Assembly: GCA_964247055.1 (NCBI GenBank)
Contig: OZ176052.1
Location: 2,976,001 to 3,040,000 of the forward strand
Length of the DNA stretch: 64,000 bases
Direction of reading: 5' to 3'
From: Paragordius varius
Taxonomy: Eukaryota; Animalia; Nematomorpha
The position numbers and the translations under genes are program-made. Shown one piece after another: positions 3,801 through 38,600 of this stretch. Every line of letters begins with the position of its first letter. The stretch's first letter is position 1. The notes below the pieces were generated by a model. It was not told the DNA's origin, did no database searches, and saw nothing but the letters and a program-made list of their open reading frames with translations.

Positions 3801-6800
3801 TTTGTTGCCAATTGGAAAGATTTACTTAAAAAAATTTAAGTGTCATTTTTACTAAAATTTTGTGGGTATATTTGTATATATTTGGAAATGTTCAAATTTT
3901 TGCGGGCCACATAAGACATCTCGGAGGGCCGTCACACTGATATATATACTATATATTGGAACAGTTTATATGGAGAAAAATTTTTTTCTGTATATATATT
4001 GTCTTGTTAAAATTAAAAAATGACTACTGAACTACGGTTTCAAAATGTTTAAAATGGAGCCTTTTCATCCTTTAAAATAATGTTCACCTTATAATATTAT
4101 TATTATCTAATTATTCAAGTCAGTAAATTATTTATTCGATTTTATAATTAAAGTAGCACACATTAAATTTAGCCTACATTTAATTATTTATTCTCAAAAG
4201 AATTTATTTAGGCTTTCTCTGGATTTGAATTGGTTAAAATTTTAAAGAACCGTTTACCCTAAAATATTTGGAAAACTTTATATTTACCACAGTATTGTAT
4301 TCTTGAACTATTCTTATATATCTAAACATATTCTATATTAATTTTTCCTTTAATATAGGTTTGGATATATTGATCAATTTGTTGAAAAAGATTGAATTAC
4401 GATATGAGACGCGTGTTGCACAAAGCTTTTATCAGGCCTACTTTACATCCATATTGGAACATTTATTTTCTGTCGTCTCTGATACATCATTAACTGCTGG
4501 TATAAATATTCGATTTTTAATCTTTGGGTGTGGTTTTCTAGGGTCTTTTTGAATATTTAATTTGGAAAACTTTAATATCACATTTATTTATTTATTTTAA
4601 AACGGTGTGCATTTTTATATGTATGTTTTGTGCTAAATGATATATAAATTAATCTACTGTAATTATAAGAGAATAATTATCCAGTAATTTTTTATATATT
4701 CTATGTTAAAATGGGATTTAATACCTAAAATGTTTTATATTATTTGTATTGTAGATTTGTTTGCGCAATCCCTTGTGTTGGAGCACTGTTATCAAGTTGT
4801 GGAAAATGGTAAATATTATTATTATTGATTATTTTTTAACGTAAAAAATTATTTGGGTGATTAGTATTAGTATATGTTTTGAAAAAGGAGCATGTTTTCA
4901 AAGACATTGCTAAAAATATTTATTAACCCTATTAAATTTAGAATGGTTATTTTTTTGGGGGAGGGGGGGGATTGTTTACTAAACCCTTTTTTCATCGTGT
5001 TAGAAATGGTGTACACTTTCAATCTAATAAAGGATTTTGAATGCTTGAATAAGATTTTTCGCTAATTATAACCGTATTTAAGTTAACAAGTCTTTGGCGA
5101 CACGAATGAATTACATTATATTGTGTCAACGAGAACTAATATTTTATGTGATAGATAATAGTTTGAATAATCGTAAAATTTTTAAAATTGCACTATATTT
5201 AAAATTTTCGATACATGAATGGACGAGAATTCAAATTATTATTTTAACCTAAGGAATTTTTTGACTTTGAAAGTTAAACAGCCCAAAAAAATTTTGTTTA
5301 CCCTGGTTTTTTTGTGTACAAAAACAATAACATATTATATATAACTTGATTTTTTTGATTATGCGCCCTCTTTATCAAAATTTTACTAAAAAAATATTTT
5401 TCTTTGAAAATATACAAGTAATGCCCATTTGTAATATATCATTCGAAAGAGTAATAAAAACTCTATAAAATGCATACTAATATGTATTACATCGACACTT
5501 AATATTGGACACAAAGAGCGACAAACGCGCGAAGCGAGAGCATTTTTTTAATTATTATATTTTTTAAACTAATGGATGAAAATAGCTTAAACTTTGTTTA
5601 GATGGTGATGAATGTCCAAAAAAGATAACACAAGAAAGTTTTTTTGATTAAAACATTTTTTTATTGCTTTTATGTCACTCAAAACAGCCATTTTTAAGTT
5701 TTTTGTTTTTTAAAAACTACCATCTCATCAATATTAATTTATTTTCTTTATAATGCTGATAATTTCGAAATTTTAAAGATAAAAACAAAGTTTAAGGTAT
5801 TTTTGATCTTTTATAGCCATTATGTAATAAATTTACTGTTATAACTATGCATTTTAGTATCCACTAGGTAAAATATTTATGATAATAATAATTTTTATTA
5901 AAAAAGCAAGCCTAAAGCTTTTTCAAACATTTTTTTTAAATTAAATACTAATATAACACTAATAATTATATTAAAATAATTTATATGATTTTCAAATTAG
6001 CTTGTCTGTGAAAATTCTTGACTTATTTGAGGATTGAAAATTTCGACCATTTAAATCCAAATAACTTTTACATCCGATTGATTTAAATGACTTACTACCA
6101 TTTAAAATATGCAGTTTTTTGCGCTCTTTCGAATGATATAAAATACTTGGCTTCATATCTAAAACTTTTAATTTTCGAAATTTTGAGTTTAATGTTAAAT
6201 TGGGGCCAAAAATTATCGATAAACTCTAGTATAAAAAAATTCTTCCATGCTAGACCAATTTTCTTTTCAGATATACTAATTATGTACTTTAATGAAATAA
6301 ATTTTAAATTTACAAGAATGGCAGTTAAAAAAAGTTAAAATTTGTTGTCTAGTGTAATATATTGCAAAATTTACAAATTATTATTTTTGATTGATTACTA
6401 GTGATTTTATGAATTTTTAACACCAAAAATTGTTTTTTTTTTCTAGGGAAATTGCCGCAATTTGATCCCAGTATGACAAATGTTGAATATATACGGCAAT
6501 ACACGTACAAACTATTGAAAACAGCCTTCCCACATCTCACGGAGTAAAATGATTAATCTAAATATATTTATAATTTTCTTAATTTGATATTTTTTATCCG
6601 AAATCTAGATTAACTTTTATTTAAAACTAAAAATTTTGATGTTTTAATTAATTTTATCGTTATTTAGTCCGCAAATAAATTTAACCATTCAAGGATTCTT
6701 TACGCATACTGATCTTGCGTTCCGTGAACACCTTCGTGATTTTTTGGTTCAAATCAGGGTATGTTTTTCCATTTAAATAAATATAAAATATCATTTAATT

Positions 6801-10360: not shown

Positions 10361-12657
10361 TTGTTGTTGTTGTTGTTGAGCTTGTAGTCGGTTATCGACC
10401 ATTAGCGATTTTGTAGGAAAACTTCCTCCATTCGGTTCTGTCGTGAGCTTTTTGAGATAGTTTTTGCAGTGACAATTTGGAAAGTGATAAGATTTCGTCT
10501 ACCCAGCGAATACGTCTGCGGCCTCTTCCTCTCTTACCATTTACTTTTCCTAACATAATATCCTTTTCCAAAGAATTGCCCCGAATAATGTGTCCAAAGT
10601 AACCGAATTTTTGTTTTATTATTTTACCCCGAAGCGTTGTTTGTGCGTTAATTTTATTTACAATGTCGATATTCTTTATTTTGTCCTTCCATGTTATACC
10701 AAGTATCTTTCTCCAGCAAAACATTTCAAACGCGTTTATTCTTTTTTCGTCTTCACTTTTGATAGTCCAGCTTTCACACCCGTATAACATGATAGGAAAG
10801 ATTAATGCATTTACTAGTCGGATTTTTGTTTTAAGGGTTATGTCATGAGATTTCCATAACTTGTAGTGTGAGGATAGAGCGCATTTGGCGATAGCTATGC
10901 GTCTTCTTATTTCTTGGGAACTGGAGCTTAAGTTGTTGATTATGCTTCCAAGGTATGTGTATTCGTTGACTACTTGAATTGTTTCGCCATTAATCCGAAG
11001 CGAGTCATAGGAATGAGGGGAGTTGATATGTAAAATTTTAGTTTTGTTGAGGTTTAATGTAAGATTGTATTTTTTGCACACATTTATAAAAGTTCGGAGA
11101 CTGTTTTCGAGGTTTGTTTGTGAATTTGCTAAGATAACCGTGTCGTCTGCGTAGTGGAGAGTCGTCAGAGTGTGACCCCCTACTTTTATTCCTGGCAGAT
11201 TTAGATCCCTCATGATACATTCCAAATATATGTTGAACAACATGGGGGATAAAATGCAGCCTTGACGCAGACCTATGTTCATTGGGCTCCAAGAGGTTGG
11301 GCCATGCGGGGTGTTAAGTGATAGGTAGGAGTTGGAGTATATGGATTTAATTAGTTTGATTAAGTGATCGGAAACTCCTATTTGTTTAAGGGCCTTCCAG
11401 AGAATGTCATGTTGAACGGTATCGAAGGCTTTAGAGAAATCCACGAAACATAGGTGTAGCTCATTTTGGAATTCACAGTTTTTTTCCATTATCCATCTAA
11501 GGTTTGAGATCATGTCTCGGCATCCTCTTTTTTCTCTAAAGCCTGCCTGTGTCATTGATATTTCCGGTTTGACATATGGTTGTAGACGGTTTTGTATTAT
11601 TTTTAGGAAAACCTTTGAGGTTTGATTGATCAATGCTATTGTACGGTAATTTTCACATAGTTTAGGATCGCCCTTTTTGAATATAGGGACCACTAGTGAT
11701 TTGTTCCAGTCCGTCGGGAATGTCGCCTCGTTGAAAATTTTTTGAAATAACGAAAGAATTAATTTTATGGGAATGTGTCTTTGTAACTCGGTAGGGATAT
11801 CATTGAATCCTTCTGCTTTGCCGGTTGATGAATGCTTCAGGGCCCATTCAATTTCTTCTTTTAGTATAGGAGGGTCATAAGTTTGTTCAGAGTTCATGGC
11901 AGTTATATTTGATTTTGAGAATAAATTTTGGATGTATTCTTCCCAGAGTTTAATTACTCCTTTTTTATCGGTTAGAAGTTTTCCGTTTGAATGAGACATA
12001 GGACCTTTGTGTATTTGTTTTTTGCGCGGTTGAATGTCTTTAATATAAGAGAAATAGTTGTGATTAAATTTAGCAGCTTGCTCGAGGTTAGCGCAGATTG
12101 TATTATAATGAGATTCTTTGTCAAATCTTATGCTTTTTTGTAGTTCATTATTAATATTTTTGTACTCAAGGGGGGTGCCCTTGGATTTTGCTACTCTTCT
12201 CTGTTCAATTAGGTCGATGCTTTGTTGTGATATGGTGAATTTTTTGTTTTTTGTTGTGGCGGGCGGTATATATTCTTTAGCTGTTTCGATGGTAATTTTG
12301 TGAATAGTAGACCAAAGATCATCTGTGTTCAATGTTTCGTATTTTAGGGATTCAAATTTATTGTTAAGGATTGGAGTAAAATCGGCAGGTATAAGTTTGT
12401 AGTTCAATTTAGTTTTGGAAAAGTTTTTTTGCGGCTGAGGAAGTTGTAGCTTTATTTTGATCTTGGCCATTAATAGGTTATGATCTGAGTTGCAGTCTGC
12501 ACTCGAGTAGCACCGGATGTTTTGAAATGAGCTTTTGTATTTTTGCATTCCTAATATGTAATCTATCTGATTCCTGTGTTTACGACACGGTGAGGTCCAG
12601 GTGTAGAGCCGTCTCTTAGGTTGTTTGAAAAACGTGTTCGCTATAAAGAGATTGGAT
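10361..12657 (-). mobile_element. 5'-truncated non-LTR retrotransposon, RTE clade (BovB-like)
   Basis: Endonuclease C-terminus plus RT in one frame, a 13-nt 3' UTR and a (CAA)6 tail at 10361..10378; visibly more GC-rich than the flanks; 5' boundary approximate; no TSD found. Confidence 0.92.
10392..12653 (-). CDS. RTE ORF: end of the APE endonuclease plus reverse transcriptase (the frame stays open upstream of the ATG at 12548)
   Basis: In-frame LFIANTFFKQPKRRLYTWTSPCRKHRNQIDYILG precedes MQKYK; motifs ADCNSDH, FVDFSKAFD, GLRQGCILSP, YADD and the RTE-type C-terminus LEKDIMLGKVNGKRGRGRRRIRW; no internal stop. Confidence 0.93.
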   Translation of the reverse strand, partial: NLFIANTFFKQPKRRLYTWTSPCRKHRNQIDYILGMQKYKSSFQNIRCYSSADCNSDHNLLMAKIKIKLQLPQPQKNFSKTKLNYKLIPADFTPILNNKFESLKYETLNTDDLWSTIHKITIETAKEYIPPATTKNKKFTISQQSIDLIEQRRVAKSKGTPLEYKNINNELQKSIRFDKESHYNTICANLEQAAKFNHNYFSYIKDIQPRKKQIHKGPMSHSNGKLLTDKKGVIKLWEEYIQNLFSKSNITAMNSEQTYDPPILKEEIEWALKHSSTGKAEGFNDIPTELQRHIPIKLILSLFQKIFNEATFPTDWNKSLVVPIFKKGDPKLCENYRTIALINQTSKVFLKIIQNRLQPYVKPEISMTQAGFREKRGCRDMISNLRWIMEKNCEFQNELHLCFVDFSKAFDTVQHDILWKALKQIGVSDHLIKLIKSIYSNSYLSLNTPHGPTSWSPMNIGLRQGCILSPMLFNIYLECIMRDLNLPGIKVGGHTLTTLHYADDTVILANSQTNLENSLRTFINVCKKYNLTLNLNKTKILHINSPHSYDSLRINGETIQVVNEYTYLGSIINNLSSSSQEIRRRIAIAKCALSSHYKLWKSHDITLKTKIRLVNALIFPIMLYGCESWTIKSEDEKRINAFEMFCWRKILGITWKDKIKNIDIVNKINAQTTLRGKIIKQKFGYFGHIIRGNSLEKDIMLGKVNGKRGRGRRRIRWVDEILSLSKLSLQKLSQKAHDRTEWRKFSYKIANGR

Positions 12658-14571: not shown

Positions 14572-17500
14572 ATGAATGTAATATTCATTTTTATTTACTT
14601 GGGGAGTCTAATAGTGTTTGGGGTTGGACTTAACACTCTTTTATTGGTGGCCTTGTTACATCGTATAAATAGACAACGGCGAACTGTAATAAGCCTATAC
14701 CTTTCAACTTTATGTTCCCTTAACCTCATGCTAGCCATCATATCTATCATATATTTGGAAACAAATAATACGATCAACAAAAATGTTAGAGCTAATCAAA
14801 ATAATGTTATTCCTGAAAATCCGGAAAAAAACACACAAGTAATACAAAGCATTCCAATAAACTCCTATTGGAAGCAGTCTAACCAATACATTTTTGATAT
14901 TATTCCTATGAGTCTTGATGGAATGACTCAACAATTCCCAACCGCTCCACTACATAATAAAGCCTTTGTAAAGAATAATATACTTATAAATGTGATTGAT
15001 CAAAATGTAGACCGTATATTGAATCAAGGAAACAATGAATCAAATACAATCCCTTTGGGCCATTTGAAAAGCCCTTTGAATAATTATCGATTTCTGAGTA
15101 AAAAAACTAAGCATACAATTACCTGTCGATGGGTCTTGTCGAGTACAATGTTACTGGTTTTCGCCTCTAATTTAATAGTTGTCCCACTTAGCATAGAACG
15201 GTATTGTTTTATATTTAAACTATTAGAAATATTGACTTAGTACCACGGTTATTTTTTTACTAAAAAGACATATAATAATCTTAATACCTTTTTTATACAA
15301 ATTGTTGTCATTAACCGACAGTTTTAAATTTCCAAAATCCACACACCCCGGTAGTTCTCAGAATATATGGTTTCATATAATGTTAAATAATTTAGTTTCG
15401 ACATTAAATTTGATTGGGTGCTGCGCATGGCAGTCCAAAGATTTGTTTAGATTATTAATTATATAAATGGCTTTGAACCCAATTAAAGTTAAGTAAATCC
15501 CTATAAAATATAATTTATATTTGAAAATTAATTAATTTGACCCGTAATTATTTTTATTCAAAATAATATTTTTGTCTTGTTGATTATGTCTTAATTGCTC
15601 AAATAAAAAAAAATCATATGATAAGTTGTTCAAAATTAAGATATTTACAAATATCTAAAAAGGGTAAAAAACTTTCTATCTTCTGCCATTAAAGTTACAG
15701 GGTCACAAATTTTTTCACATTTTTTATATTAGTTCGTATAGGAAATGGCATTTTTTACAGTTTTGTTCTCTTAGTAATTTTGTTTTTGTCATTAGTATTG
15801 AAAAATATCCTGTATTTAAAAAGGTTTTTTCCAAGATTGTGTTAACACACATAACAAGAGGAAAAAAAGGAACATTAATTGGAAACAAGGTTTGATATTT
15901 GACCTAAGGCATCTAAGAAAACAGTTAAACCACTTCAAAAGGCTTCTGTGTTAAATACCACAATTTTTTAAGACAAATCTCAGGGTATAACCGTTAATTA
16001 ATTATTTTCCAATTAGATGTGTTGTTCTAAATACCGCCTCCATGTTTAAAGAAATATAAAAAAAATTTTTAAATTTTAGTTAGAGCTTTTTTTCCATAAA
16101 ATAATTAGTATTCGATGGATGTTAAAGTGTATATTACTTGATATCTAATTACAGTAGTATTTATACGTCATAAAAGTCGTCACCTAATTTTTAAATAAAA
16201 ATAAAAAAAATTATATTGGAAAATTAAGTTTAATAACCAAATTTGGATATATAACTAGCTTTGATTTCCCTAAAATTAGTTGGAAAAAGATATTAATATT
16301 TATCAATTAGCCTGTATTTAGTTTAGTAGATACCCAAAATTAACTATGGTATAACCTATGTATCTAAGTTATATAAATTATTAATGTATTAAGTAATTTA
16401 CACAGGATTCTATTATAAATTATCGAATGTATGTAATTTGGCTAAATTTACGCCTAAAATATGATGTAGGATTCATACTTATTAATGATTTTATATATGG
16501 GGCAAAAAAATATTTTTGCAAAAAGTTCAGAGGCAATGTACCTACCTACCTACCTATCTATTTACAAATATCAGAATATAATTATTTTTAATGGTTATTC
16601 TACTACAGTAAAATAAATCCTCTTATGCGAATTATTTCTAATTTATAAAAATATTAATAATAATTAAAATGGGATGTTTTGGGCAATAAACACTAGGAAA
16701 CATTTAGCACTTAGCCTATTAATTATCTTGTAATTTAGTTAAAAGCTTTTTTGTCTTGTTTACAGTAGGTGGTGAGTCCACAGATAATAGATTTTGTGTA
16801 ATTTTAAGTTGCCAACCTAAGATTTGAGTAAAGATATAATCTTAAATAAAATATAAATCAAACTTGCCGAAAATTGGTCAAAATTAAAAACACTAATGAT
16901 AGATGGCTTTAATTATATCAATTTTTAAGTGTAGATTTCGTTCACGAAAAATGGGGTTTTACGCACAAAGAAATGCAAAAACCTATGCACGAAAAATATC
17001 TGTTATAACTATTTTGGTTTTAACTTTGTAATTGTAGCAGGCCAGGTTTTATAATTTAGAATATTAGACAAAAAGTTACGATACCCAATTAACTTGAATA
17101 AAATTTGATAAAAATAACTATTCGTTTTAACTATATTTTGACATCAAATTATGGCAGTATAATATGCTAAAACTTTTGCTAACAATATCTAAATTTGTTA
17201 ATTTTTCTATTTTATTTTGTTCTTCTTGAGTTTTTTGGATGTTGTAACATATGTCCAAGTATTTTAAATTATTGTATATATTATATTTCAGATGGCACCT
17301 ATATCCATAATTTTGGTGGTATTTAGAATGCTCTCTTAGAATAATTCCACTAAATGGGCATGGCTTTAATCTTTGACAAGAATTACAATATTTAATATCG
17401 TATAGTGGGTAGGGCGTTAGACTCGTTTACTGCGTGCCAAAGTTTAACCCCTGAACTACGCAAACAATGTTTTCATCATCACTGTCAGCCCTGGGCAGGC

Positions 17501-20500
17501 GAGTGTTTAAAGCCTTCACATGTCCGAATACAAATTAAGTCCTTACCCTTTAATGAAAAAAAAGGAAAAAAGAGATTTTAAACTATATATATAGATGATG
17601 AATATATTGTGGACACGATTTGAGTTAGTTTGATGACATGTTAAGAAAAACAGCCCATAAAATGAGATTACTTTTAGTTTATAAGCTTATGGTAAATTTT
17701 TATAATTACAATTTGCATATTTAACCATAACCTAACTCTAGTTTTAATAGAACTCAGGTCTGATATTTGCACTCAAATTATATCAATATGAGATAAGCAA
17801 AAAATTATGCTAGAAAGTTTTCTATTTATACAATTCTATAGACAGATATCGTTGATGAAATATTTAGAACATTATTAACTAATTTACAAATAATTATAAG
17901 GTATGTAATTACTCTCCAATTTTCGTACATTTACGTCAATCCTATTATACTAGTTTCTATACGTAATTAACTATATCGTGTATTTCATTGAACCATCCTC
18001 CTAAACAATTTTTATAATTGATGTTATGTTAACTTAATATTTTATTATTGATTTTCAGTCTAAAATTGGCCATTTTTATTCTTAAAATAGATTTATTTAA
18101 TGACAACATGGTTAAATTTAAACATAGCAAACAGTTAAAAATAATTTCCGGTTGTTGGCATAAATTAAAATTTAATTTATTTTTTATGCAAATGAATACA
18201 TTTTCTTGACTCTAAATGTAATAAATATATATAAAATTTGTCTTTTTATATAAATTTATTTTATTGTTATGAACGTAACTTTGTCTGTGTTGGGATTTTC
18301 CTGCTCATAAACATTTGAAATAAACCGACATCTCTCAAAAATTAATAAATTTTTATTTTTATTTAATTGATGATGCATAGTTATTTTTTTATATAATATA
18401 AAAATGTTTCTGCTAAAGTTTTTATACCATATATCTTATATTTAATTATTTTGGTTTATTACAATATTACAACTATAATGAATAAATTTTATACCAGCTA
18501 CTAAAAATTTGTATTTTTTTATTTAATTATAAACTGATAATAGGATCCAATAAAGTTTTTTTGAAAAACAAGAGTATTTGAGTGTGAATTTTTATTATTT
18601 CTAACATCAAATTTTCTAAAAAAAACTTTTTATTCAAGGATTAATATATAATAATTTCAAAATAAATATATTTTTTAGACATTGGATAAGTAGCTACCAA
18701 AGGTTGGGTGTGCAGTCACAAATGCGAATTTATGTTAATGGCACATTAACTAGTTTTAAACATAATACTCTTTAATGCAACAAATTAATGTAAATAATTT
18801 TTATTTTTATTTGTTAGTTAAATGTCATTCTATCACATTAAAGTAATTTAATTAATTAAATTCGCATATACTTTGTTAATTTATTATGATTTATGAGCAG
18901 TCTTTTTGACCGGTCGAAAACTTAACCTCCAGTATAACATACGTACAATGTCTTTAGAAAATGTTTTGGGAGTTACAGTGAGAATGGTGATAAAAAAATT
19001 TATTTTTTATCCAAATATTTTATTATAAAAAAAATTTCAAAGCAAATAATATTTTTTGCTGTATATAAAGCCATTAATATAATTGCGTTATGAAATGGGG
19101 AAACCCCTTTTAGGCACAAAACGGAAATTTTAGCTTATAGGTATTGGTAAATGTACATTTTAATTACTTTTATATCAAATAATCTTTATATCTCCAAACA
19201 ATATTTAGATATGTAGCCATAGTATATCCCTTCTTCAGTTTCAAAAAGAGTTGTAAAAAACGGGCCCTCAAATTAATTGTTCTGTTTCTTACAATATCCG
19301 TATCTCTAGCCATTCCATACATTCTGAAAACTCATGCGTATGAAATACCATCAATAACATTATTAGATAGTAATAATAATCTTTTTGCACAAAAATATTA
19401 TGAATTCAAAACTAATCCTGAGCAACTTTTACAAAAAGAGAATGTCAAATATATTCTTGGAGAAACTAATCGAAATAGAACCATAGCAGTATATTTTGCC
19501 AATTGGAAACAAGAAATTTCAGTTAGAAATCATCCTACAACAAAATCATTAAATAATGATATGATAGAAGTCGAAAAACAACAAGACTTCCCTACTTCAA
19601 CCATGATTTATTGTTCTAATGTATGGTCAATCCATGTACATTATATCATCTTTTTAACTGTAATCTATATCGCTGTGTTTGGCCTACCAATCATGATTAA
19701 GGCTTACACTGGTTTACGTATCTTACGTGTCTTGATACATCGTAAAAAATTACGTATGCAAGTTCAAGTCCACCATCCTCAACAAGAAAAACGATCAAGG
19801 AACAACAAAAATAAAAGACAATGTAAAAAGATAAATAATAATGCTAGAAACCATGACATTATAATTTCTAATGGAAAACACAATGGTATTATAGTTTCTA
19901 ATAGAAATGTTGTTGGATTAAGAAAAAAGGGGTGTAATATTTTGACTTGTCTATTTGTTAACAAAGTTGATAAATCACAGGCAATTAAGAATACACATCT
20001 AGTACCTACATGTAAAATGGTCGGTATTAGAGAGATGTTTACAAAAATATTTTTTAAAGATAATAATAATAAAGAAAATCATAGAACGAAGCATGGAACG
20101 GATTATATTGCAACGAAGTCAGAAGAATATAACACTCCAGGAATAATCTATCAGGGCCCAAACAAATTTAATTTTTTTAATCCGCTTCTTATTTGGCTAA
20201 GATTGCGGGGTCGAATGTTTCAGCGTAAAAGAAACCAAAAGCTTGTAAAAAATGTTACTACTGACCGCGAAACTGATAAAAAACGTTTTAACTTTGGACA
20301 TATCCTAGGCAGTTCAACAATGTATTCGACTACATCTTCATCCATATCTGGTCGATCGATATTGTTGCTATCATCCTACAATAAGAAAAAGACTAATGCC
20401 ATTGGAAAAAATAAATATTGTTCGACCACCTCATCGTCAAATTTCGTGTCCACGTCTGCGACAGGCACAACCAATTTTTCGTCTGCTAGAACTGTCCCCT

Positions 20501-21495
20501 CGTCAATAGTTTTAGACTCGGATGTTTTTGATGAAACAACCTCTAACGGCTTTCAAACCACCAAACAAATAACTCGATCAAACCATAACTGTAGTAAAAA
20601 GTTACAAGTAGAACCAACACAAGATGTCATATATGAAGCACCGTCGGTGGAAGGTGGAATACAAATTGTGATAAATGAAGAGATCTCCATAATATCTGCT
20701 GTCGAAAGCCCTCCTAACATTCGATTGGCTTCAGACTTAGCTATGTCAGACACTCTGACAATACCAATGTTAAAATCAAATACAGATATAAAGTCTAATA
20801 AAACAGATGGTCCTTTAAGTGCTGTGATTCAAACAAACCCTACTTTCCCAAACGTACAATACCTGTCCATAACTATGAATGCACACAGTAACAAAAAGGA
20901 TAATCTTTGCCCATCTCAACGTAGCTCCATATCAGAGGTTGAAAGAAAGAGTGTGGATACCCTGTCTTTACTTACAGATTTATCAAGCATAAATGACATA
21001 AATGGAACAAATAATAATAGGAATGTTATCGCTATTGATACAAGTAAAATACCACTGTTATCTGACCCTCATCAGCCTACCGTCACAGAGAATCATAACA
21101 TAGATAAAAATGATCAAAAAGATTCAAACTTATATTTGCATAAACGGTTAAAAACTGGTAGAGAATTTCAACGACACGTAACAGTCCCCAAAAAACGGAT
21201 TAAACATCAAACGATGTCAACTATAATTTTAATACATTTTATCGCTACCGTACCGCACTTAATTTTGAATGGGATAATGTTATACGTGCTTATAATGGAG
21301 TATATCACAACAAGTCATCCCATGAACGGCCTAAGAAATGAAAATTCTATTTTCCGTAACTTATATTACCTCATTAAAATGGGCGCAATAATTGATCCCA
21401 TTACGATTGTTATTACACGAAGGGGCTTAAAAATGGCCATAAATCGGATTATCTATAAAATGTTTTGTAAATTATGTAGAATATTTAAAAAATAA
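14572..21495 (+). CDS. Rhodopsin-like (class A) orphan GPCR, 971 aa; exons 14572..15200 and 19209..21495
   Basis: The phase-2 GT-AG intron 15201..19208 joins SIER to YVAIVYP. The frame is open from 19209 into the 644-aa ORF. Seven hydrophobic segments, a TM3 Cys (TCRW), an ECL2 Cys (IYCS), TM7 DP and a Cys-containing helix 8 are present. Confidence 0.88.
17396..17572 (+). mobile_element. Possible tRNA-derived SINE relic in the GPCR intron
   Basis: A-box-like TAGTGGGTAGGGCG and degenerate B-box-like AGTTTAACCCC, a GC-richer body and an A-rich 3' end; single copy in the window. Confidence 0.35.
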
Positions 21496-24225
21496 AACAA
21501 ATAAATAATATTCTATTTTGTATGGAAATGGACTTTTAATTTATTTTGTTATATTTTAATTAATAAAATATTTTTCTTTGACATTTCATCACTTTTTTGG
21601 GTAGTTTTTACTGAAACTATTTTAAATTTAAATATCTTAAAGGTAATTAAAATAGGCCGATTTTAAAAGTATTCTTTCTTGGCCTTTTAATACAAATTTT
21701 TTTTAGAAAACTAAAATGTTAATTTTTTCGTCGCCATTTTTATTCTATAAATTTTTCAAATTAGTGTAGGCAAATAAATGTAGATTATAGTTAAAAATGT
21801 AATAATATTGTTGTGTTTTACAGCAAATTATAAATAAGCTGTTTAGTTCAATCGTGTTTTGGAGCCGTTCCAATTTCAGACTTTAGAAGTCGCAAAATTG
21901 TAAAAATATAAGCTTTTTATTTTGATAAATGTATCTTAACCCAAATAACTTTTAAAACGGTAGTTTATTTACAAGATTGAGCTCTGGAAAATATAAAACA
22001 ACCCAAACTTGTAATCGCGGAGAAAAAAGTGAAAAGGTCATAAAGTGTTAAAAAAAGTAACGTTTTCATATTAGATAAATTTAAAAATAGCATGTTAATT
22101 ATAACAGCAAAATCAATAATTTACTACTTAAATTTGTTGAATATAAAACATAATGTTGTTAGTTAATAATATTATTATCTAATTTAATTGGTTAATTGAT
22201 AAGCTATTTAATTTTAAAATACAATTATCATTAGCCGTGCCATGCCACGCCACCCTAAGACTCGGTCGAAACATAATATACTTTGATATGCAAACAAAAC
22301 TCTACCAAACATTTATAAATATTTAAAATTTTAATATCTCAGTGGGTGATATTTCTATCCCAAAATTAATATAAGGAACTAACAAATTAAGTCAATAATA
22401 TGAATCAAAATCCTAGACTGATTATAAATAGGTAAAATATACAAAGTTGTGAGAAAATTGCATCAAAGCCAACATTTTACTTATTTATAAAAAATATAGA
22501 TAATTATATTGGTAAAAAAGAACGTCTGAAAAAAAATTATTAAAAATCAGGATATTATGAAAGATTTTAGGATTTATACCGATTCTTAAAACCATATGCG
22601 GAAGAACATATATTTTTGCGACTGACGTGGATATATTTTTTAAGAAAAAAATGATGTGCATGGGTTAGGTCTAATAGTAGGCGATACTTTTGAAGACTAT
22701 GATCGGCACATTAATTAAGGACATAAGAGGGCTATTTAATTTTAATGCGTTTTTAATAGAAAAAAGTCCATATTTGTTTATAAATTTTATATGAAATTGA
22801 GCTCCATGCCTAACTTAAAAAGGAGTTTAACTATGATTTAGTTTTATAAACAAATGTCTCATATCATTTAATTAATATGGCCTCCTAAGTGTCCAGAAAA
22901 ATTGCTCAGATAAAATTTTTGGGGACTTGGTTTTTTGCGACAGCTGATTTGTAAACATAGCGAATTTAATAAACTGTGTCAATCATAATCGGTGCGTTCA
23001 GAAATATAAAATAAAATTATGTATTTTGTATGGACTTCCGTTTTCCAAAAGGTTCAAAGACACACAATTAGACTAGCATTTTTATTCAAATCTCTATCTT
23101 TCTAAAAATTGGGCGTAACACAGAATTTATATTTACAAAATGGCTCGACTATGCTGGAAGCATTTATAAATCAAAAATAAATAGCCATTATTTGAATGAG
23201 TTAGGTTGCTGAAATGCCTTAAAATAAATTTTTAGATATCACGTAGCACAGGATATCATTTAAACTGGTTTAGGGGGCCATCAAATTTGATAATTGTAAA
23301 TAATTATAAATATTATGATTAAAAAATAAGGGTTAACATATTTATGTTCAAAATATATTTGTATCAAGTTGGTGTTCAACCTTTTATATTCGTTAAATTT
23401 GGCTCCAAAATACGTATTGTTAATCAAGATTTGGAAAAAGCATTATTTGTTCTATTTTTAACTCGTGTTAATAGTCATTAAAACTAATTAAGGAGGATAA
23501 TATACTAATATTAATATCTAAATCGTAAACAAAATTTATTTTTATCTTACAATCTTAGAGGAGATTGACATTTGAGGGTTCATTCGTCAATATTACTAAA
23601 TATACTTTGATATTAATTTTATTAAGATCTTTCAATTAAATAATTAATATTGTATTTTATCCATTTACATTATTTTCTTATGTTTTAATAAGTAAAACAA
23701 ACAAATAATTTTGCGCCAAAAGCAAAAATCATTTTTTACGTATAAAATACACCTATTTTTATCTTTAAAAAATAATATAAAAGCGCCCTCTATAATTATT
23801 TAATATTCAAAATGATTGAAAAATAAAATATATTTTAGGAATATATTATATGTTTACAGGTTATAAAATTATAGGAACTTAGGTCAATGTTAAATTATTT
23901 TACGAAAGCTAATCTATTTGCAAATTTGTATTTACCACCAACTCTACGTAAAATGTTATAAATTGTTATATATATTAGGAGTTTTCTAATGTATATTAAC
24001 TCAGGTTCTTTGCATAACGTATAAATCTTTCGCCTTTTACTAAAGATTTCCGTGCATAGAACCAGTTATGAGTCATAAATCCATTTTTGGTAAATTTTTC
24101 TATCCTCTTTGAGGACTTCACAAACCAATAATATAAACCTAAATTTAGTACCAAAATAATCTTAACCAAGGACTCTATGTAAATACTATTGTAAATTGTC
24201 TTGTCATAATTTATGGATTCTCACT

Positions 24226-24810: not shown

Positions 24811-25317
24811 TTTAAATGGTACAATTTTCAATAGTGATCTAATAACTCACAGCCAATTAACCATTTATAACGATGATTATTAAATATTGTTTTACTCTAG
24901 TGTAAGCGCTACTTTTTACTCAAAACGATTTTAATAACGTCCAATATATATACCCGATAAAGTAATATGGTGGCTGTTGATATTTAAGTGAAATGAATTT
25001 GATACCATATGATTAAACCTATAAAATTGTTTTTAACCAAACATGTACCCCAATTCCTTAAAAAAACAATGACAAAAACTATTATGGAATTAGCTCGGTT
25101 AAATATTGGTCTTAAGTATGTTTTTGAACGGTAAAACGGTCTTTATAAGCCATTGACCACTATAAATTTATTATCTGATAGCAAACGTATAAATGCGTTA
25201 TCTTAAGCATTTTACATCTCTAAATTATTTCCTGATCTATTCCATTAAATAATAAATCCAATGATAATATCGACAGGCTGCGAGTAATAACTTTTTAATA
25301 AAATAAAATTTTATATA

Positions 25318-25476
25318 CAGTAGCGTATGGCATAAAAAATTATTAGTCCATAAAAGAATAAAAAAATGTTTTTTTTAAAAAGCAAGCCTCAATATACACA
25401 TATCCATAATATCCCCTTGTTTATTAAAAAAACATTTTTTTTCTATGGACTAATATTGTTATGCCATACGCTACTG
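25318..25476. mobile_element. Tc1/mariner-type MITE family R4, copy 1
   Basis: Long TIR CAGTAGCGTATGGCATAA...TTATGCCATACGCTACTG flanked by TA; second copy at 44637. Confidence 0.88.
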
Positions 25477-25714
25477 TATATACTATTTAGAGCTTATTAT
25501 AGATATAAACCACATGTTTTGATTAAAATCTATAACTGACACAACATATTTGTTTTTCAAACCCTTCACATCTGCTTTGTATGTCATAAATAGGGATATC
25601 GTAATTTAAACAAAGGAAAAGCGAAAAATCTTCCGAGTAATGTTAATTAGGACAAGAAATATAGGTAACAAAAACTATTTTGTTTTATAAATTTGAAAAA
25701 AAATATTTATTAAG

Positions 25715-26085
25715 CTATTGTGTAACATTGATTTGAGTGCTAAGTTCTGCATTTTTACGCATTTGAATGTCTTCTTTAACCAATTGATGAAGACCAATTA
25801 ACTTCTCTTCTATTACTTTCATTATATCTTTATGATCGTTTTGTAACCCTGTAATAATTAATAAATTAACTTATTATAGAGTTTCGTATATGGCGAACTG
25901 AATAGACATCTATGTCTGAGCGGGGAAATCCATTTTCATCAAGAACTGATTCATGTAAATCGGTATTATTCTAAAATAAAACTTTTGTTTACAGATTTTA
26001 ATTCAAAATCTAAGCCTTTTAATTCTTTTTCCATTTCATCCCTTTTTTGTATAAGAGACTTGAGCTCCTCTTGCGCCGCTTCCAT
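25715..26085 (-). CDS. PSMD9: 26S proteasome assembly chaperone PSMD9/p27/Nas2-like, N-terminal domain only (108 aa); exons 26085..25993, 25970..25871, 25848..25715
   Basis: The spliced product MEAAQEELKSLIQKRDEMEKELKGLDFELKS/NNTDLHESVLDENGFPRSDIDVYSVRHIRNSII/RLQNDHKDIMKVIEEKLIGLHQL carries the Nas2_N signature (GFPRSDID.Y.VR, LQNDH). Both introns are 22-nt GT-AG. The 3' end is less certain. Confidence 0.88.
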
Positions 26086-26322
26086 ATGCTACCGAATTCA
26101 AAAATGTATTTTTTGGACAATTTATGAATAAATTAACACTTTGATTCAAATTGGGGTAAATTGATACCCGAGACTAAATTTAATTAATATTATTAAAAAT
26201 CAACTGAAGAAAACCGTCTTAATTAAAATTTTGCTTCTATCCTAATAAAAATTGTATATAAATAAGCCAAAATATATAAATAAAATTATGTTTTGAAAAA
26301 TAAATCTATGTCAGACCACTTC

Positions 26323-28533: not shown

Positions 28534-31500
28534 TTATTTTTTGTACAAAATAGATTTTGTCATATTTTTCCTGAATATTTTCAAAGATTTTTCGTATAAA
28601 GGTTGGAGTTGATCAAGTGGTATTAATTTATCATTTGAAACATTCGTATCAGATGAAGGACTAGGTAAAGGTTGACAAAAACTATCAAACGTGGATTCAT
28701 TACACCATTCAGCTTTGCAAAACATTGCCTTAAAGTTTGGAAGCTAAATGCAATTACAACCATTATTAACTATACCATAAATATTTATATAAAATAAAAT
28801 TCACAGTCATTATAACGTTAAATAACAATAATGAAATCAGATATATAATTAGAAGAATATAATTTGGTAAAAAATTGGTAATCTCAAAATTTTTGAAGTA
28901 ATTGAGAACATCAATCATTTACTAATCCTTAAGTTTTAAATAATACCAATTTTAAAAAATATAATGACCCTTATTGTTTTACAAAAATAATTAAATTTTG
29001 TGTGGATATCAAAGATCTCACTATATCTTATTAACAAAATTTTACTGTAACAAGTTAATTTAAATAATTGCATTTTATAACAAACATAAGTTATTATGTC
29101 TTTATCAGACTGGCATATTTCAAAAAAATTATTATGGCAAACTATTTTTGGCTAAATAAGACTAGCATTTAGAAAATCAACCTTATTATTAAATCAATTA
29201 GTATATTTTAACAGGTTTTATATGCTCAAAACAATTTAATACAATTTAGGGGTAAAAATTAATTGCATAATATCTCATTTGAACAGCTTTTTCCATATAA
29301 TATACATAAAATTTGTTTGTTATTCTAAATTATGATTAAAAAAGATGTATTTTCTTTAAAAATTAATATTATCAATATATTAAATTTTTTTATACTCAAA
29401 AGTTAAATTTTTTTAAATAATATCTAAAACAATACTTGATTTTCCTCAACTAAGGTAAAAGCAAACCCTTGTTTACCAGCTCTGGCTGTTCGACCGCATC
29501 GATGAACATAATTTTTTATCTTGATGGGCACATCGTAATTCACAATTATCAAAGGGAAAAAATTATTTTTATAATCTTTTTTATCAGGTTGACAAATATT
29601 TGAATTTGTTTTCAAAGCAATTTTATCATTTATATTGATATCCATGCCTCTTGCCATAAGGTCCGAACATATCAGTACTTTAAGCTAAATATAAATATAG
29701 TCAAATGTTGTTGTAAAAGCAGAAACCGTAGTTTATTTAAATTTAAGCATATTACCAGCACGGGAGACAAAATGCAAAAAATATTTTTTGGGCACTTTTT
29801 TAAGAAAAATGATTTAGTTTTAAAAATGCGTTTTTGTATTTGTATCGGTATACTATATATAAAAATAGTCTGAAGAGGTTTTCAAATATTATATTTGTGC
29901 CCGAAAATATTTTAAAATTTTTTTGTCATTTTATATGGATAAATAGTATTGCATAAAAAGAGAAAAAGTAATCTTTTGAAAGAGCCCTACTAAAGGATTG
30001 ACCGTATAATTTTTATCATTTAAAAAATTTAAAATGGAGTTTGGAATAGCAGGCATAATTAAAAGTCAAATATTAGGTGATATCCTTATACATTTATATT
30101 TTAAATCACAAAAAAAAACATATTTGTTGGACTTACATTGTGTACAAGAAGAGATGATGAACAATTATTTTTACGTTTTTTGGATGTGGTGGATAATGCA
30201 TTATTTGGTGATGATTGTAGTAAATTAATATTACTAGGTGCTTGAAATTGTTGTAAAATGCGACGATTTCTAAGCGCTTCGTTTCGACTTATAATGTGAC
30301 TTACTTTTTCTGCCAATACCCCAGAAAGATTGAGTAATTGAGCCAAGCTATATTTCATACAGCATGAAATAAGGTGTTATTATTACATACACTTTTTTAT
30401 ATAAAATGATGAAAAATTACCATTTACAGTTCAAATTGACCCCTAAACAATTTAAATTCACCCTCGAACAATTAAACTTCACCCTTAAACAATTCAACAC
30501 CCTTAAACATTTTAAATTCACCCTTATACAATTCAAATTCACCCTGAACAATTCACACCCTCGAACAATCAACTTCACCCTTGAATAATTCAAATTCACC
30601 CTCGAACAATTCGAATTCACCTAAAATAAATTATGTGTCCTTAAATTTAAAAATTACCTATATTTTTTAATATTTTTATAAAATGAAGTTTTTAAAATTA
30701 ATATAATACTGAAAAAATAACAAACTATGCCATAAGAATATATTTTATATTAATGATGAGTTATATTAGCCCGAAAACACATAATTTATTTTTAGGGTCA
30801 AGAATTGTTCAAGGGTGAATATGAATTGTTTAAGAGTGAATATGAATTGTTTAAGGGTGAATATGAATTGTTCAAGGGTCAATATGAATTGTTTAAGGGT
30901 GAATATGAATTGTTCAAGGGTGAATATGAATTGTTCAAGGGTCAATATGAATTGTTTAAGGGTGAATATGAATTGTTCAAGGGTGAATATGAATTGTTCA
31001 AGGGTGAATATGAATTGTTAAAGGGTGAATATGAATTGTTTAAAGGTGAATTCGAATTGTTTAAGGGTGAATTTAAATTGTTTAAGGGTGAATTTGAATT
31101 GTTTAAGGGAGAATTTGAATTGTTAGAGGGTGAATTTGAATTGTTCGAGGGTGAATTTGAATTGTAAATGGTTTATTTGAGATGTAAGAATATACTTAAC
31201 TTTTTATAAGATTTAAGTAGGGACCGCATAAAATTTTATACTCTTAAATGATTTTTAAATAATAGTACTTATCAGTCGGTATAAAAATATGATAATAACT
31301 TTCTTAAAAAAAATTGGATATATTCGCAAAAAAGTTCTATAATTCCAAACATATAATAAATGGCTTAATTTTTACAAGCTTATTTCACAATTTGTCTGAA
31401 ATTCAATAGGTGTAAAAAGATTAAAAGATTAAGATGTTTTATAATATAAATACAACACAAAAAGAGGTTTAAATAATAATAATAGGTGAGCAAGATGATG

Positions 31501-34033: not shown

Positions 34034-34714
34034 CCATTTTTTAGTAATCAACCAACGGAGACGCTAAAAATAATATATTTATTTAAAAAATGGATGATAC
34101 ATTTATATGAAAAAAATTTAAGAAATATCATAACTATCCTATAATTGACAAAGAGGTTTCAATTAATATAGTCAAATAATTAAATTAAAATACTTTAATA
34201 TTCATGTTTCGGGTATATTGCACAAAAACTCGATAAACTTGATGAGCCAATTCCTTGGTCGGTAGCAGTATAAGAGCTCTTATTGGCTTAATTTTTAGGT
34301 TGTTAGTATGGTTTTTTTCAAATATATTGATAATTGGTAAAGCGTAGGCCAGCGTTTTACCGCTCCCTGTCGGTGCTTTAACACAAATATCTCTTGGGCG
34401 ATAACAAGCATTCAACACGGGTGAATAATTATGTAACAATTTGAATATTACGCATCTTTGAACAGGGAATAGATGATTAATTTTATTTTCTTTAAGTAAT
34501 GTGCGGAGTGTTGGACACAAAAGTTTTTTAATTTGCTTAAGGTTATATCCTTCAAAGTCAGATTTATCAGCCGGATCTAAAGAAAATTTGAAAGAATGTT
34601 CCATCCATATAGGTCTAACATTTTTAATCTTGACATTATATATAGCTTAAAAAGCAATACCTTCTCGACCGCTAATATTTTTGGTTCTTTTATCAAATCA
34701 AATCCTTCTCCCAT
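28534..34714 (-). CDS. DDX51: DEAD-box RNA helicase DDX51/Dbp6-like, about 655 aa; exons 34714..34661, 34628..34194, 33923..33640, 33071..32793, 32106..31956, 31670..31576, 30347..30137, 29684..29436, 28743..28534
   Basis: Phase-consistent GT-AG introns. Motifs FPVQ, RPRDICVKAPTGSGKT, LPTKELA, STPGRL, DEAD, QKLLFSAT, LCFT, ARGMD and YVHRCGRTARAG. The first exon and the 32-nt intron are less certain (alternative start at ATG 34604). Confidence 0.9.
30419..31172. mobile_element. Foldback-like MITE family R2, expanded copy (DDX51 intron)
   Basis: TIR ACCATTTACA(G/A)TTCAAATT; inverted 21-bp arrays (TGTTCAAGGGTGAATATGAAT) of roughly 9 units left and 17 units right around an AT-rich core. Confidence 0.9.
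32147..32424. mobile_element. TA-flanked MITE family R3 (DDX51 intron)
   Basis: Ends (C/T)AGTAAAA...TTTTACTG with inverted ACAACC/GGTTGT and TACGGA/TCCGTA blocks; related to 59887..60150 and 41527. Confidence 0.65.
33997..34031. repeat. (TA)n microsatellite (similar tracts near 10219, 32123, 35651, 40296, 43838, 52841 and 60801)
   Basis: Direct dinucleotide run. Confidence 0.95.
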
Positions 34715-35684: not shown

Positions 35685-38600
35685 ATAATTTTTTAAGGGG
35701 GGGGGATATATTAGTTTTTCACTTTTTATAGTTATCATTGTGATTTATTTTAGACGTTAAATTTGGGAATCTTCAAAAAACGTAGAAATTAATATATATA
35801 ATTTTTTGAAATTAATTTTCCCTTTAGAATTTAATACTATGTCAGTTTTATATTTTATATGGTTTACTGTATTTTAAAATTTAAAACAATATTTGCTTTT
35901 ATAGAAAAATAGTATATAATTCAATTTTATCAATTATGCATGTATATTTTTGGATATTTGTTTATTGTATCAAGTAATTAGGTTATCTCTTATTTTATTA
36001 CAAATGTTAACCAAAATATAAATTCCAATTGGTAAAACAACTGGAACAATTGGTTTAAAACAATTTTTTGATAATGAATGATAAGAATTTATAACTGTAA
36101 AAAGACTTAAAATTTTAAATTCCCATCGTTTAACTACTTCTATTTATATTATGAATATTGATATAATAAAATAATTTTTTTCCGTTTGTTGTGATATAGA
36201 AACCAGCCAATATTCTCGTTATGGGCGATGTTAATTTCATGTACATTAGTGAACATTTTAACGGTGGTTTTCCGGTTAAACAACGCGGCCTAGTCAAAGT
36301 TGCCGATATGGGTTTTGCCCGAATCTTTAATTGTCCGCTAAAACCGCTCGCTGACTTGGACCCTGTTGTAGTTACTTTTTGGTACAGAGCTCCTGAGCTA
36401 CTCCTAGGTGCTAGGCATTATACCAAGGCAATAGGTAAGTATTTTTATGATATTAGTTTGAAAATTAAGTTGTTTAAAGTCTTTCAATTTTAGAGAGTGA
36501 TTATATGTAGTTTACAAATGGCTAGTATCGTTTAAGTAATATAACTGTCCAAATTTGTGCAGAATCCAAAATTATAATTTTTATATTTGTTACATATTTA
36601 AGCACATTAATAAATAAGTAAATTTATTTTATTACCAATAGATATTTGGGCGATTGGATGCATTTTTGCCGAACTTTTAACTTTTGAACCCATTTTTCAT
36701 TGCCGACAAGAGGATATAAAAACGAGTAATCCATATCACAAAGATCAACTTGATAGAATTTTCAATGTTATGGGATTCCCATTAGGTACTAACTATTTAG
36801 ATTTAAGGGTAAAATAAAACCTACGTTTTTTAAATTCTTCAAGTCAAAGTAGAAGGCTATCGATTTTTATTAATCATCCATAATTTATATCCTTTCTGTA
36901 TAAAATAGCCTATTTGATTAAGTTTGTTTTTTAATTTTAAATTGACTATTATATGGACATTAGTATAATATAGTTTTATTGTATATACAAAAATTAATGA
37001 TAATTTTTCCCTATATTTTGCTTATATAATTCTTTGTTGAACACGCAGAAAAGGATTGGGAAGATATAAGGAAAATGCCTGAACACTTGACACTCTTGAA
37101 AGATTTTAAACGTGCCAATTATTTGAATTGCAGCTTAGTGAAGTATATGGATAAATACAAAATTAAACCTGATAATTTGGCTTTTAAATTGGTATTTCTA
37201 AATTTTATATAATAAAACTGTCATATTTTTGATAATAATTAATATATTGTGCATTGGGAAGACAAACATTCTTTATAAAAACATGCATATTTTTAAAATC
37301 CTCTTTTTTAAATATGAATAGTAAAAATTGGTAAAACTTACAATCAAATAGCAAGCATTTAATTTTTATATAAAATAAAGGAGAAACGATTGTTTTCTAT
37401 ATAAAAAAATTTAGTTTTGTCTTTATAATTTTAATATTTAATTTGCATTAAATTTGACTTCCTAATCAATTTATATAATAATAAATAGCTATCTAAACTA
37501 TTAATCATGGATCCAGTTAAACGCATTACTGCCGAACAGGCTATGTCAGACCCATATTTTTTGGAAGATCCTTTGCCCACACGAGAGTATATCATATGTT
37601 TTTTTTGGATTAATATTGAAATATTATTTTTATGAAGACAATATCCGTATGAAATATCTTTGATTTCACAAATATTAACCATCTTTTTTGGTGTTTGTTT
37701 AATCCTTAATTTGATTAAATGGTTAATTTTTTTTAGCTTGCATTCGATTCCTACTGTAAAATGTTAAGTTTCTATATACAAAGTTTCATATAAAAGAAAT
37801 TGTTGTGTTGCGTGCCAACAAGCTCAAACTAAAAACTTTTTCAATTTCAACATCATCACTCCATATCTTGAGTGTAAGAACGGTTACATTATTTATTAGT
37901 AACCTAAATATCAAACGATAAGTATATGATGAATTCAAATAATATATATATATTAAAAAAAATCTTAATGTAAATGAAAAAAAAATAATTTTATATGATT
38001 AAAGTGTTTTTGATGGAATGCCCATCCCATATCCCAAAAGAGAATTTATTGCTGACGAGGAATCGGAGGACAAACAACAAATTGAACCAGGAAAAGTAAA
38101 ATTTTGTAGATATACCATTTGCACTTCAAGAGTGTCCTTGAACACTTCAAGTTGGTCCTTTGACTTTTTTTTGTTTTGTTTTAAACTTTATCAATCAAAT
38201 CGTATATCATTCATCTATTTTATCGTTTTTAACCTATTTTCTATTATTTAACATAAATTTTAAATCCATATGACACCTTTTCATCATTGAGAAACCGTAT
38301 AACTTTTTTAATTTCTTAAAATTATTTTGGATATTCAAGAGATTTTAACACGAAATGAAAAATTATATGAGTTTTCTGGGTTATTGATTACAATTTTTTA
38401 TTGAAAACATTTAAAATTAATAATTTTGATAAATTGGAAAAAAAATAGTTTGAAACAAAAAAGTGGTTTTTAAATAAAACTTTTTGTTTTTAAATGAATA
38501 AATATATCATAAATAAAGAAAATTAGGTTAATAAATAATAAAATAAAAAAATAAATGCAAAAATTATGGTCAACTCAAAATTTAAAAAGAACCAAAAACT

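Follow-up and report, generated by a model that had tools for sequence, protein, structure and literature searches.

A putative three-exon PSMD9 gene

The window (the whole 64,000-nt stretch of DNA analysed) carries on its minus strand a tiny three-exon gene in what is a gordiid horsehair-worm genome. As judged from its sequence, the gene is probably a 108-amino-acid, Nas2_N-only orthologue of PSMD9/Nas2/p27, and the two 22-nt stretches that separate its exons are probably genuine U2-type GT-AG spliceosomal introns (Table 1). Taken jointly with the placement of the introns discussed below, we give this reading a probability of about 0.88. A canonical U5 snRNA gene lies 1.6 kb downstream, and further along the window are a DEAD-box helicase gene and a CDK8-like kinase gene.

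The three coding pieces occupy three different frames of the minus strand. An in-frame TAG stands two codons upstream of the ATG of exon 1, and this ATG is aligned to the start codon of the orthologue in the horsehair worm Gordionus. At the other end, the AATAAA so soon after the stop codon makes it probable that the gene ends there. A re-reading of the letters returned both 22-nt GT..AG stretches exactly as they had first been noted (25992..25971 and 25870..25849), and our translations of the three coding pieces agree with those in the preliminary description. It also holds that neither length is a multiple of three and that each stretch opens onto a stop: translated without a break, the frame runs into intron 1 as ...SVNKSFILE and into intron 2 as IIS, so that a stop codon is reached at most nine codons into either.

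Table 1. Coordinates of the PSMD9-like gene, of neighbouring genes in the window, and of the Gordionus orthologue
Feature	Position	Strand	Remarks
Exon 1 (CDS, 31 codons)	25993..26085	-	ATG at 26085; Nas2_N profile 1-23
Intron 1 (putative), 22 nt, GTAAACAAAAGTTTTATTTTAG	25971..25992	-	GT..AG, phase 0, 3n+1, in-frame stop if retained
Exon 2, 100 nt (33 codons + 1 nt)	25871..25970	-	Nas2_N profile 25-57
Intron 2 (putative), 22 nt, GTTAATTTATTAATTATTACAG	25849..25870	-	GT..AG, phase 1, 3n+1, in-frame stop if retained
Exon 3, 134 nt (2 nt + 43 codons + stop)	25715..25848	-	TAG at 25717-25715; Nas2_N profile 59-79
AATAAA, candidate poly(A) signal	25706..25711	-	3 nt past the stop codon; read from the sequence
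U5 snRNA gene	23997-24115	+	Rfam RF00020, 88.8 bits, model 1-117 of 117
DEAD-box gene	DEAD profile 7-76 at 34185-34604; Helicase_C end at 29424-29657	-	profile matches
CDK8-like kinase gene	from 34803	+	exons roughly 200-500 nt apart
Gordionus PSMD9 gene	L001:6001-6656; intron 1 at 6094-6131, intron 2 at 6235-6510		annotated gene

Homology of the predicted spliced product

Scanned separately against the Pfam Nas2_N profile, the three coding pieces match abutting segments of it, the junction residues alone missing, and exon 2 by itself reaches an E-value of 1.3e-11. Once both stretches are removed, residues 8-86 of the 108-amino-acid product align without a gap to profile positions 1-79 (101.2 bits against a cut-off of 23.2 bits, E-value 3.1e-29), which confirms the gapless Nas2_N domain of the preliminary description. 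The alignment to the N-terminal domain of yeast Nas2 (3WHJ) is likewise gapless over both junctions.

The closest relative of the spliced product is a 113-amino-acid protein of Gordionus sp. m RMFG-2023, the Montseny horsehair worm, which is 63% identical to it, is the sole close relative in a collection of 5.8 billion proteins, and itself has no domain other than Nas2_N. Exact look-up in a collection of 15 billion proteins returned neither the 108-amino-acid spliced product nor the 39-amino-acid ORF of the unspliced form, and a search of metagenome contigs with an exon-junction pattern that tolerated 0-22 intervening nt gave no match.

Of the PSMD9 identity first proposed, the Nas2_N domain stands, but this is not a full PSMD9, as the PDZ domain is absent. 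PSMD9 of other animals runs on from exon 3 into PDZ exons, whereas here and in Gordionus the frame ends about 22-26 residues after Nas2_N. A tblastn search for the PDZ half of PSMD9 gave no match, either across the 64-kb window or in 6-kb flanks around the Gordionus gene, and neither a motif scan nor six-frame reading turned up PDZ exons downstream in the window. The Nas2_N-only PSMD9 of hairworms (108 and 113 amino acids) would reflect either domain loss or gene fission.

Intron positions in PSMD9 of other animals

We mapped PSMD9 in Gordionus, Owenia (annelid), Asterias (echinoderm), Actinia (cnidarian), Fopius (insect), and Sparus (fish); every exon map gives back its annotated protein exactly. 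In a MAFFT alignment, intron 1 falls at column 41 in phase 0 and intron 2 at column 75 in phase 1 in six of the six orthologues, and the two 22-nt stretches are identical to these introns in both column and phase. The preliminary description had expected such a coincidence of exon boundaries at the same codons for human PSMD9, and it holds in the six other animals mapped here. Exon 2 is 100-103 nt long across all the orthologues. The introns at these two sites measure 61-1,448 nt in the five animals that are not hairworms, and 38 nt (phase 0) and 276 nt (phase 1) in Gordionus, where the exon structure could be solved exactly. At the second site, then, the size of one orthologous intron differs up to about ten- to twelvefold between two gordiid genera (276 versus 22 nt).

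The agreement of column and phase in six animals makes it almost certain that the 22-nt stretches are real U2-type introns that have shrunk to 22 nt. Both would then sit at the gene's two most ancient intron sites, at a size near the smallest known in animals; this placement, read from sequence comparison, is part of the joint reading given above. The same positional argument has been used to validate the tiny introns of myxozoans (PMC13644364).

Choice of splice boundaries

The region contains 38 GT..AG pairs spaced 15-80 nt apart, and we removed these singly or in twos. Among all such single and double removals, that of 22 + 22 nt gives both the longest open reading frame and the best mean score against the six orthologues. 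The runner-up is a version in which the introns are real and intron 1 has other boundaries, being 37 nt long and running from 25982 to 25946. It leaves an open frame of 103 amino acids, but its homology score is 186 against 201 for the 22-nt version, it deletes residues aligned to conserved positions, and it lies off the site and phase common to the six other animals. Other boundaries are possible for intron 1 alone, and we consider them very improbable there.

A homology-free census of tiny introns in the window (GT..AG spacings of 16-45 nt flanked by at least 30 open codons) was dropped as uninformative in AT-rich DNA. It counted 163 GT..AG cases on the plus strand alone versus 276-443 for control dinucleotide pairs on both strands, and so gave no excess.

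Evidence from sequence reads

Read-derived contigs were compared with the locus through sampled 31-mers, comprising 41 words from the gene (25700-26110) and 64 from its flanks, the same words being assumed in both searches. The contigs of run X1 hold 40 of the 41 gene words (0.98) and those of X2 hold 36 (0.88). Both runs also hold most of the flank words and are in this respect DNA-like, and about 11 of the gene words that they hold must overlap the two stretches. These shares indicate that contigs built from reads contain the DNA form with both stretches in place.

Runs X3 and X4 present a different picture, with about 26 of the 41 gene words versus about two of the 64 flank words (Fisher p 5e-12). 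Their gene share of 0.63 fits the ceiling of 0.73 expected if both stretches were missing and misfits an unspliced form that is represented as fully as in X1, with the proviso that a word share cannot tell which words are lacking and that a fragmentary contig would yield the same number. Judged by these word shares, X3 and X4 would seem to be transcript-like data that hold the exons without the two stretches.

The hold that X3 and X4 have on the exons bears on whether the locus is a decaying pseudogene, that is, a truncated PSMD9 relic from which the stretches are never removed and in which the homology is a remnant. The loss of the PDZ half would fit such decay, as would a product that has neither protein nor transcript record in the collections searched, but the truncation to Nas2_N alone has been retained in Gordionus, whose protein is 63% identical and conserves the core motifs, and the start codon, both pairs of splice sites, the stop codon, and the AATAAA are all intact. 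The coding sequence has been maintained, with a pN of 0.30 that is well under the pS of 0.82 against Gordionus (only pN and pS are given, and no dN/dS, because synonymous sites are saturated at this distance). A run of 108 stop-free codons would arise by chance with a probability of ~6e-5 at the base composition of the window. We therefore regard a pseudogene as very unlikely.

An assembly artefact, with small indel errors or a spurious insertion behind the interruptions, has no point in its favour that we could find and is hardly conceivable, since a 1-nt indel cannot yield 22 extra bases with in-frame stops that are unmatched in the domain profile, and nearly all the gene words recur in the contigs of X1 and X2. 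Equally negligible is removal at the DNA level, by somatic excision of the kind seen for ciliate internal eliminated sequences, or translational bypass, in place of RNA splicing: the size is like that of the ciliate elements, but a ciliate-type element is ruled out by boundaries that are GT..AG, not TA..TA, and by the presence of the stretches in the DNA-like runs, and in position and phase the stretches coincide with ancient spliceosomal introns.

Proposed splicing of the 22-nt introns

The 5' sites of the two introns are GTAAAC and GTTAAT, which keep little beyond the GT and an A at +4. Their 3' halves are T-rich and end in TTTTAG and TTACAG, and internal A residues are present (n = 2 introns). 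An assignment to the U12 type is ruled out, as these 5' sites differ from the [AG]TATCCTT that goes with a TCCTTAAC branch site.

The ordinary major spliceosome would cut both stretches from the pre-mRNA through intron definition. In this model, recognition at the 5' end would rely on a minimal site (GTA or GTT with an A at +4) and at the 3' end on the T-rich, nematode-like terminus, with an internal A serving as the branch point. Retention should do no harm, each intron being 3n+1 and containing an in-frame stop; an unspliced mRNA would terminate after 39 codons, and the product if an intron is retained is 39 or 66 residues long.

The nearby U5 gene is canonical, with the invariant loop I (CGCCUUUUACUAAAG) and an Sm site, and published ultra-short introns of animals have been read as conventional U2-dependent splicing (PMC13644364). 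The “unusually compact spliceosomal geometry” that the preliminary description drew from the 22-nt size is in this light speculation, without support here.

Normal-sized introns and the genomic neighbourhood

The genes that neighbour the PSMD9-like gene have introns of ordinary size. One intron of the CDK8-like gene is ~206 nt long and begins with the canonical GTAAGT, and the positions of the DEAD and Helicase_C matches imply that the DEAD-box gene has about 1 kb of coding sequence stretched across some 5 kb. Neighbouring introns of about 200 nt and more mean that tiny and normal introns coexist, so that the side-by-side occurrence proposed at the outset is supported within this window; tiny introns as the main class are not what the window displays. 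In the CDK8-like gene, a candidate in-frame tiny intron in the exon at 36230 was rejected: no choice of GT..AG there preserves the frame, and the sequence is taken as a lineage-specific insertion.

Several other features of the neighbourhood were recorded. A 32-nt GT..AG stretch at 34629-34660 on the minus strand, near the 5' end of the DEAD-box (DDX51-like) gene, is present as first noted. Within the span of the same gene, a tandem array of ~21-nt units at 30400-31170 has open frames on both strands, with repeated EYELFKG-like peptides. About 230 nt downstream of the stop codon of the PSMD9-like gene lies a near-palindrome of ~183 nt (25306-25488), hairpin- or MITE-like in look, whose outer arms of 33 nt are 91% complementary and enclose nested inner arms. 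The 3'-side neighbour of the PSMD9-like gene is a 644-amino-acid ORF (19561-21495, plus strand) that is rich in Ser, Asn, and Thr and has no Pfam match, and upstream of this ORF is a membrane-protein-like ORF of 222 amino acids (14572-15240). An intact ORF of 718 amino acids on the minus strand (10392-12548) is reverse-transcriptase-like, carries a YADD motif, and is probably a non-LTR retrotransposon; its presence indicates that the region is not compact.

Implications

To our knowledge, introns shorter than 30 nt were long believed to be absent from animals. We lean towards the view that horsehair worms make up a third animal lineage, independent of dicyemids and myxobolids, in which introns fall below 30 nt, and that, unlike in those two, such introns persist alongside kilobase introns in a genome that is large and rich in repeats. 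If that is true, the miniaturisation of introns does not depend on compaction of the genome. The lengths of 276 and 22 nt at one orthologous site in two gordiids would then suggest that shrinkage is recent and ongoing, and such genera would offer a natural series for studying how an ordinary spliceosome with a canonical U5 handles 22-nt introns. The hairworm case would bring in an ecdysozoan lineage whose genome contains both tiny and kilobase introns, and an orthologous intron whose length differs more than tenfold between related genera.

There is also a practical side, in that the default minimum intron lengths of aligners and gene finders break genes of this kind. We infer that such broken gene models may account in part for the low BUSCO scores of hairworm genomes and for the “gene losses” reported from them.

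Comparison with known systems

The literature that we searched yielded no report on hairworm introns (a Current Biology study on Acutogordius and Nectonema was outside the reach of the search), and the word “intron” is absent from the hairworm genome papers among it.

As a protein, the product resembles PSMD9/Nas2/p27, a chaperone of proteasome assembly (Pfam PF18265 Nas2_N plus PDZ; structure 3WHJ), in its full, gapless Nas2_N domain, and its gene in the orthologous introns 1 and 2; it differs in having no PDZ domain and in stopping some 22 residues beyond Nas2_N.

Among nematodes, the sister phylum of hairworms, the introns of Caenorhabditis elegans peak near 47 nt and have a 3' site, UUUUCAG, that is read by U2AF. 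The PSMD9 introns are like nematode introns in their T-rich 3' ends and in that no branch-point consensus is evident, and unlike them in being half the usual nematode minimum length.

Introns of comparable length with GT..AG ends occur in ciliates and nucleomorphs, at about 25 nt in Paramecium and 18-21 nt in chlorarachniophyte nucleomorphs. Those of Paramecium are reportedly 3n+1 with in-frame stops, their retention being caught by translation-dependent surveillance, as Jaillon and colleagues are said to have described in 2008. Both PSMD9 introns share the 3n+1 length and the in-frame stops, n = 2 being too few for a 3n bias. In contrast to the hairworm, these are unicellular lineages or organelle remnants in which tiny introns are of uniform size. 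Shorter introns still, of 15-16 nt, are found in Stentor (PMC13644364).

Among animals, introns of less than 30 nt have been accepted only in dicyemids and myxobolid myxozoans, where they are tied to parasitic genome reduction (Hadjez et al. 2026, MBE, PMC13644364); those of Dicyema japonicum go back to Lu et al. 2019, as cited in PMC13644364. No other animal among 51 genomes had introns below 30 nt, and hairworms or Nematomorpha are not mentioned (PMC13644364). In dicyemids and myxobolids the tiny introns are dominant, with medians of 22-27 nt, and the genomes are small (PMC13644364), whereas the PSMD9 introns of the hairworm, an ecdysozoan (Nematomorpha), have AT-rich, transposon-bearing surroundings and neighbouring introns of ~200 nt to kilobase size. 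In both cases the introns are GT-AG introns of ~20-27 nt at conserved positions between conserved exons, with A residues before the AG and a reduced 5' signal, which in myxobolids and Dicyema amounts to little more than GTa (PMC13644364). The PSMD9 introns also equal in length the 22-nt medians of Thelohanellus and Myxobolus rasmusseni (PMC13644364). Both are shorter than 30 nt and occupy a conserved intron position, the two properties by which the ultra-short class of animal introns has been defined (PMC13644364).
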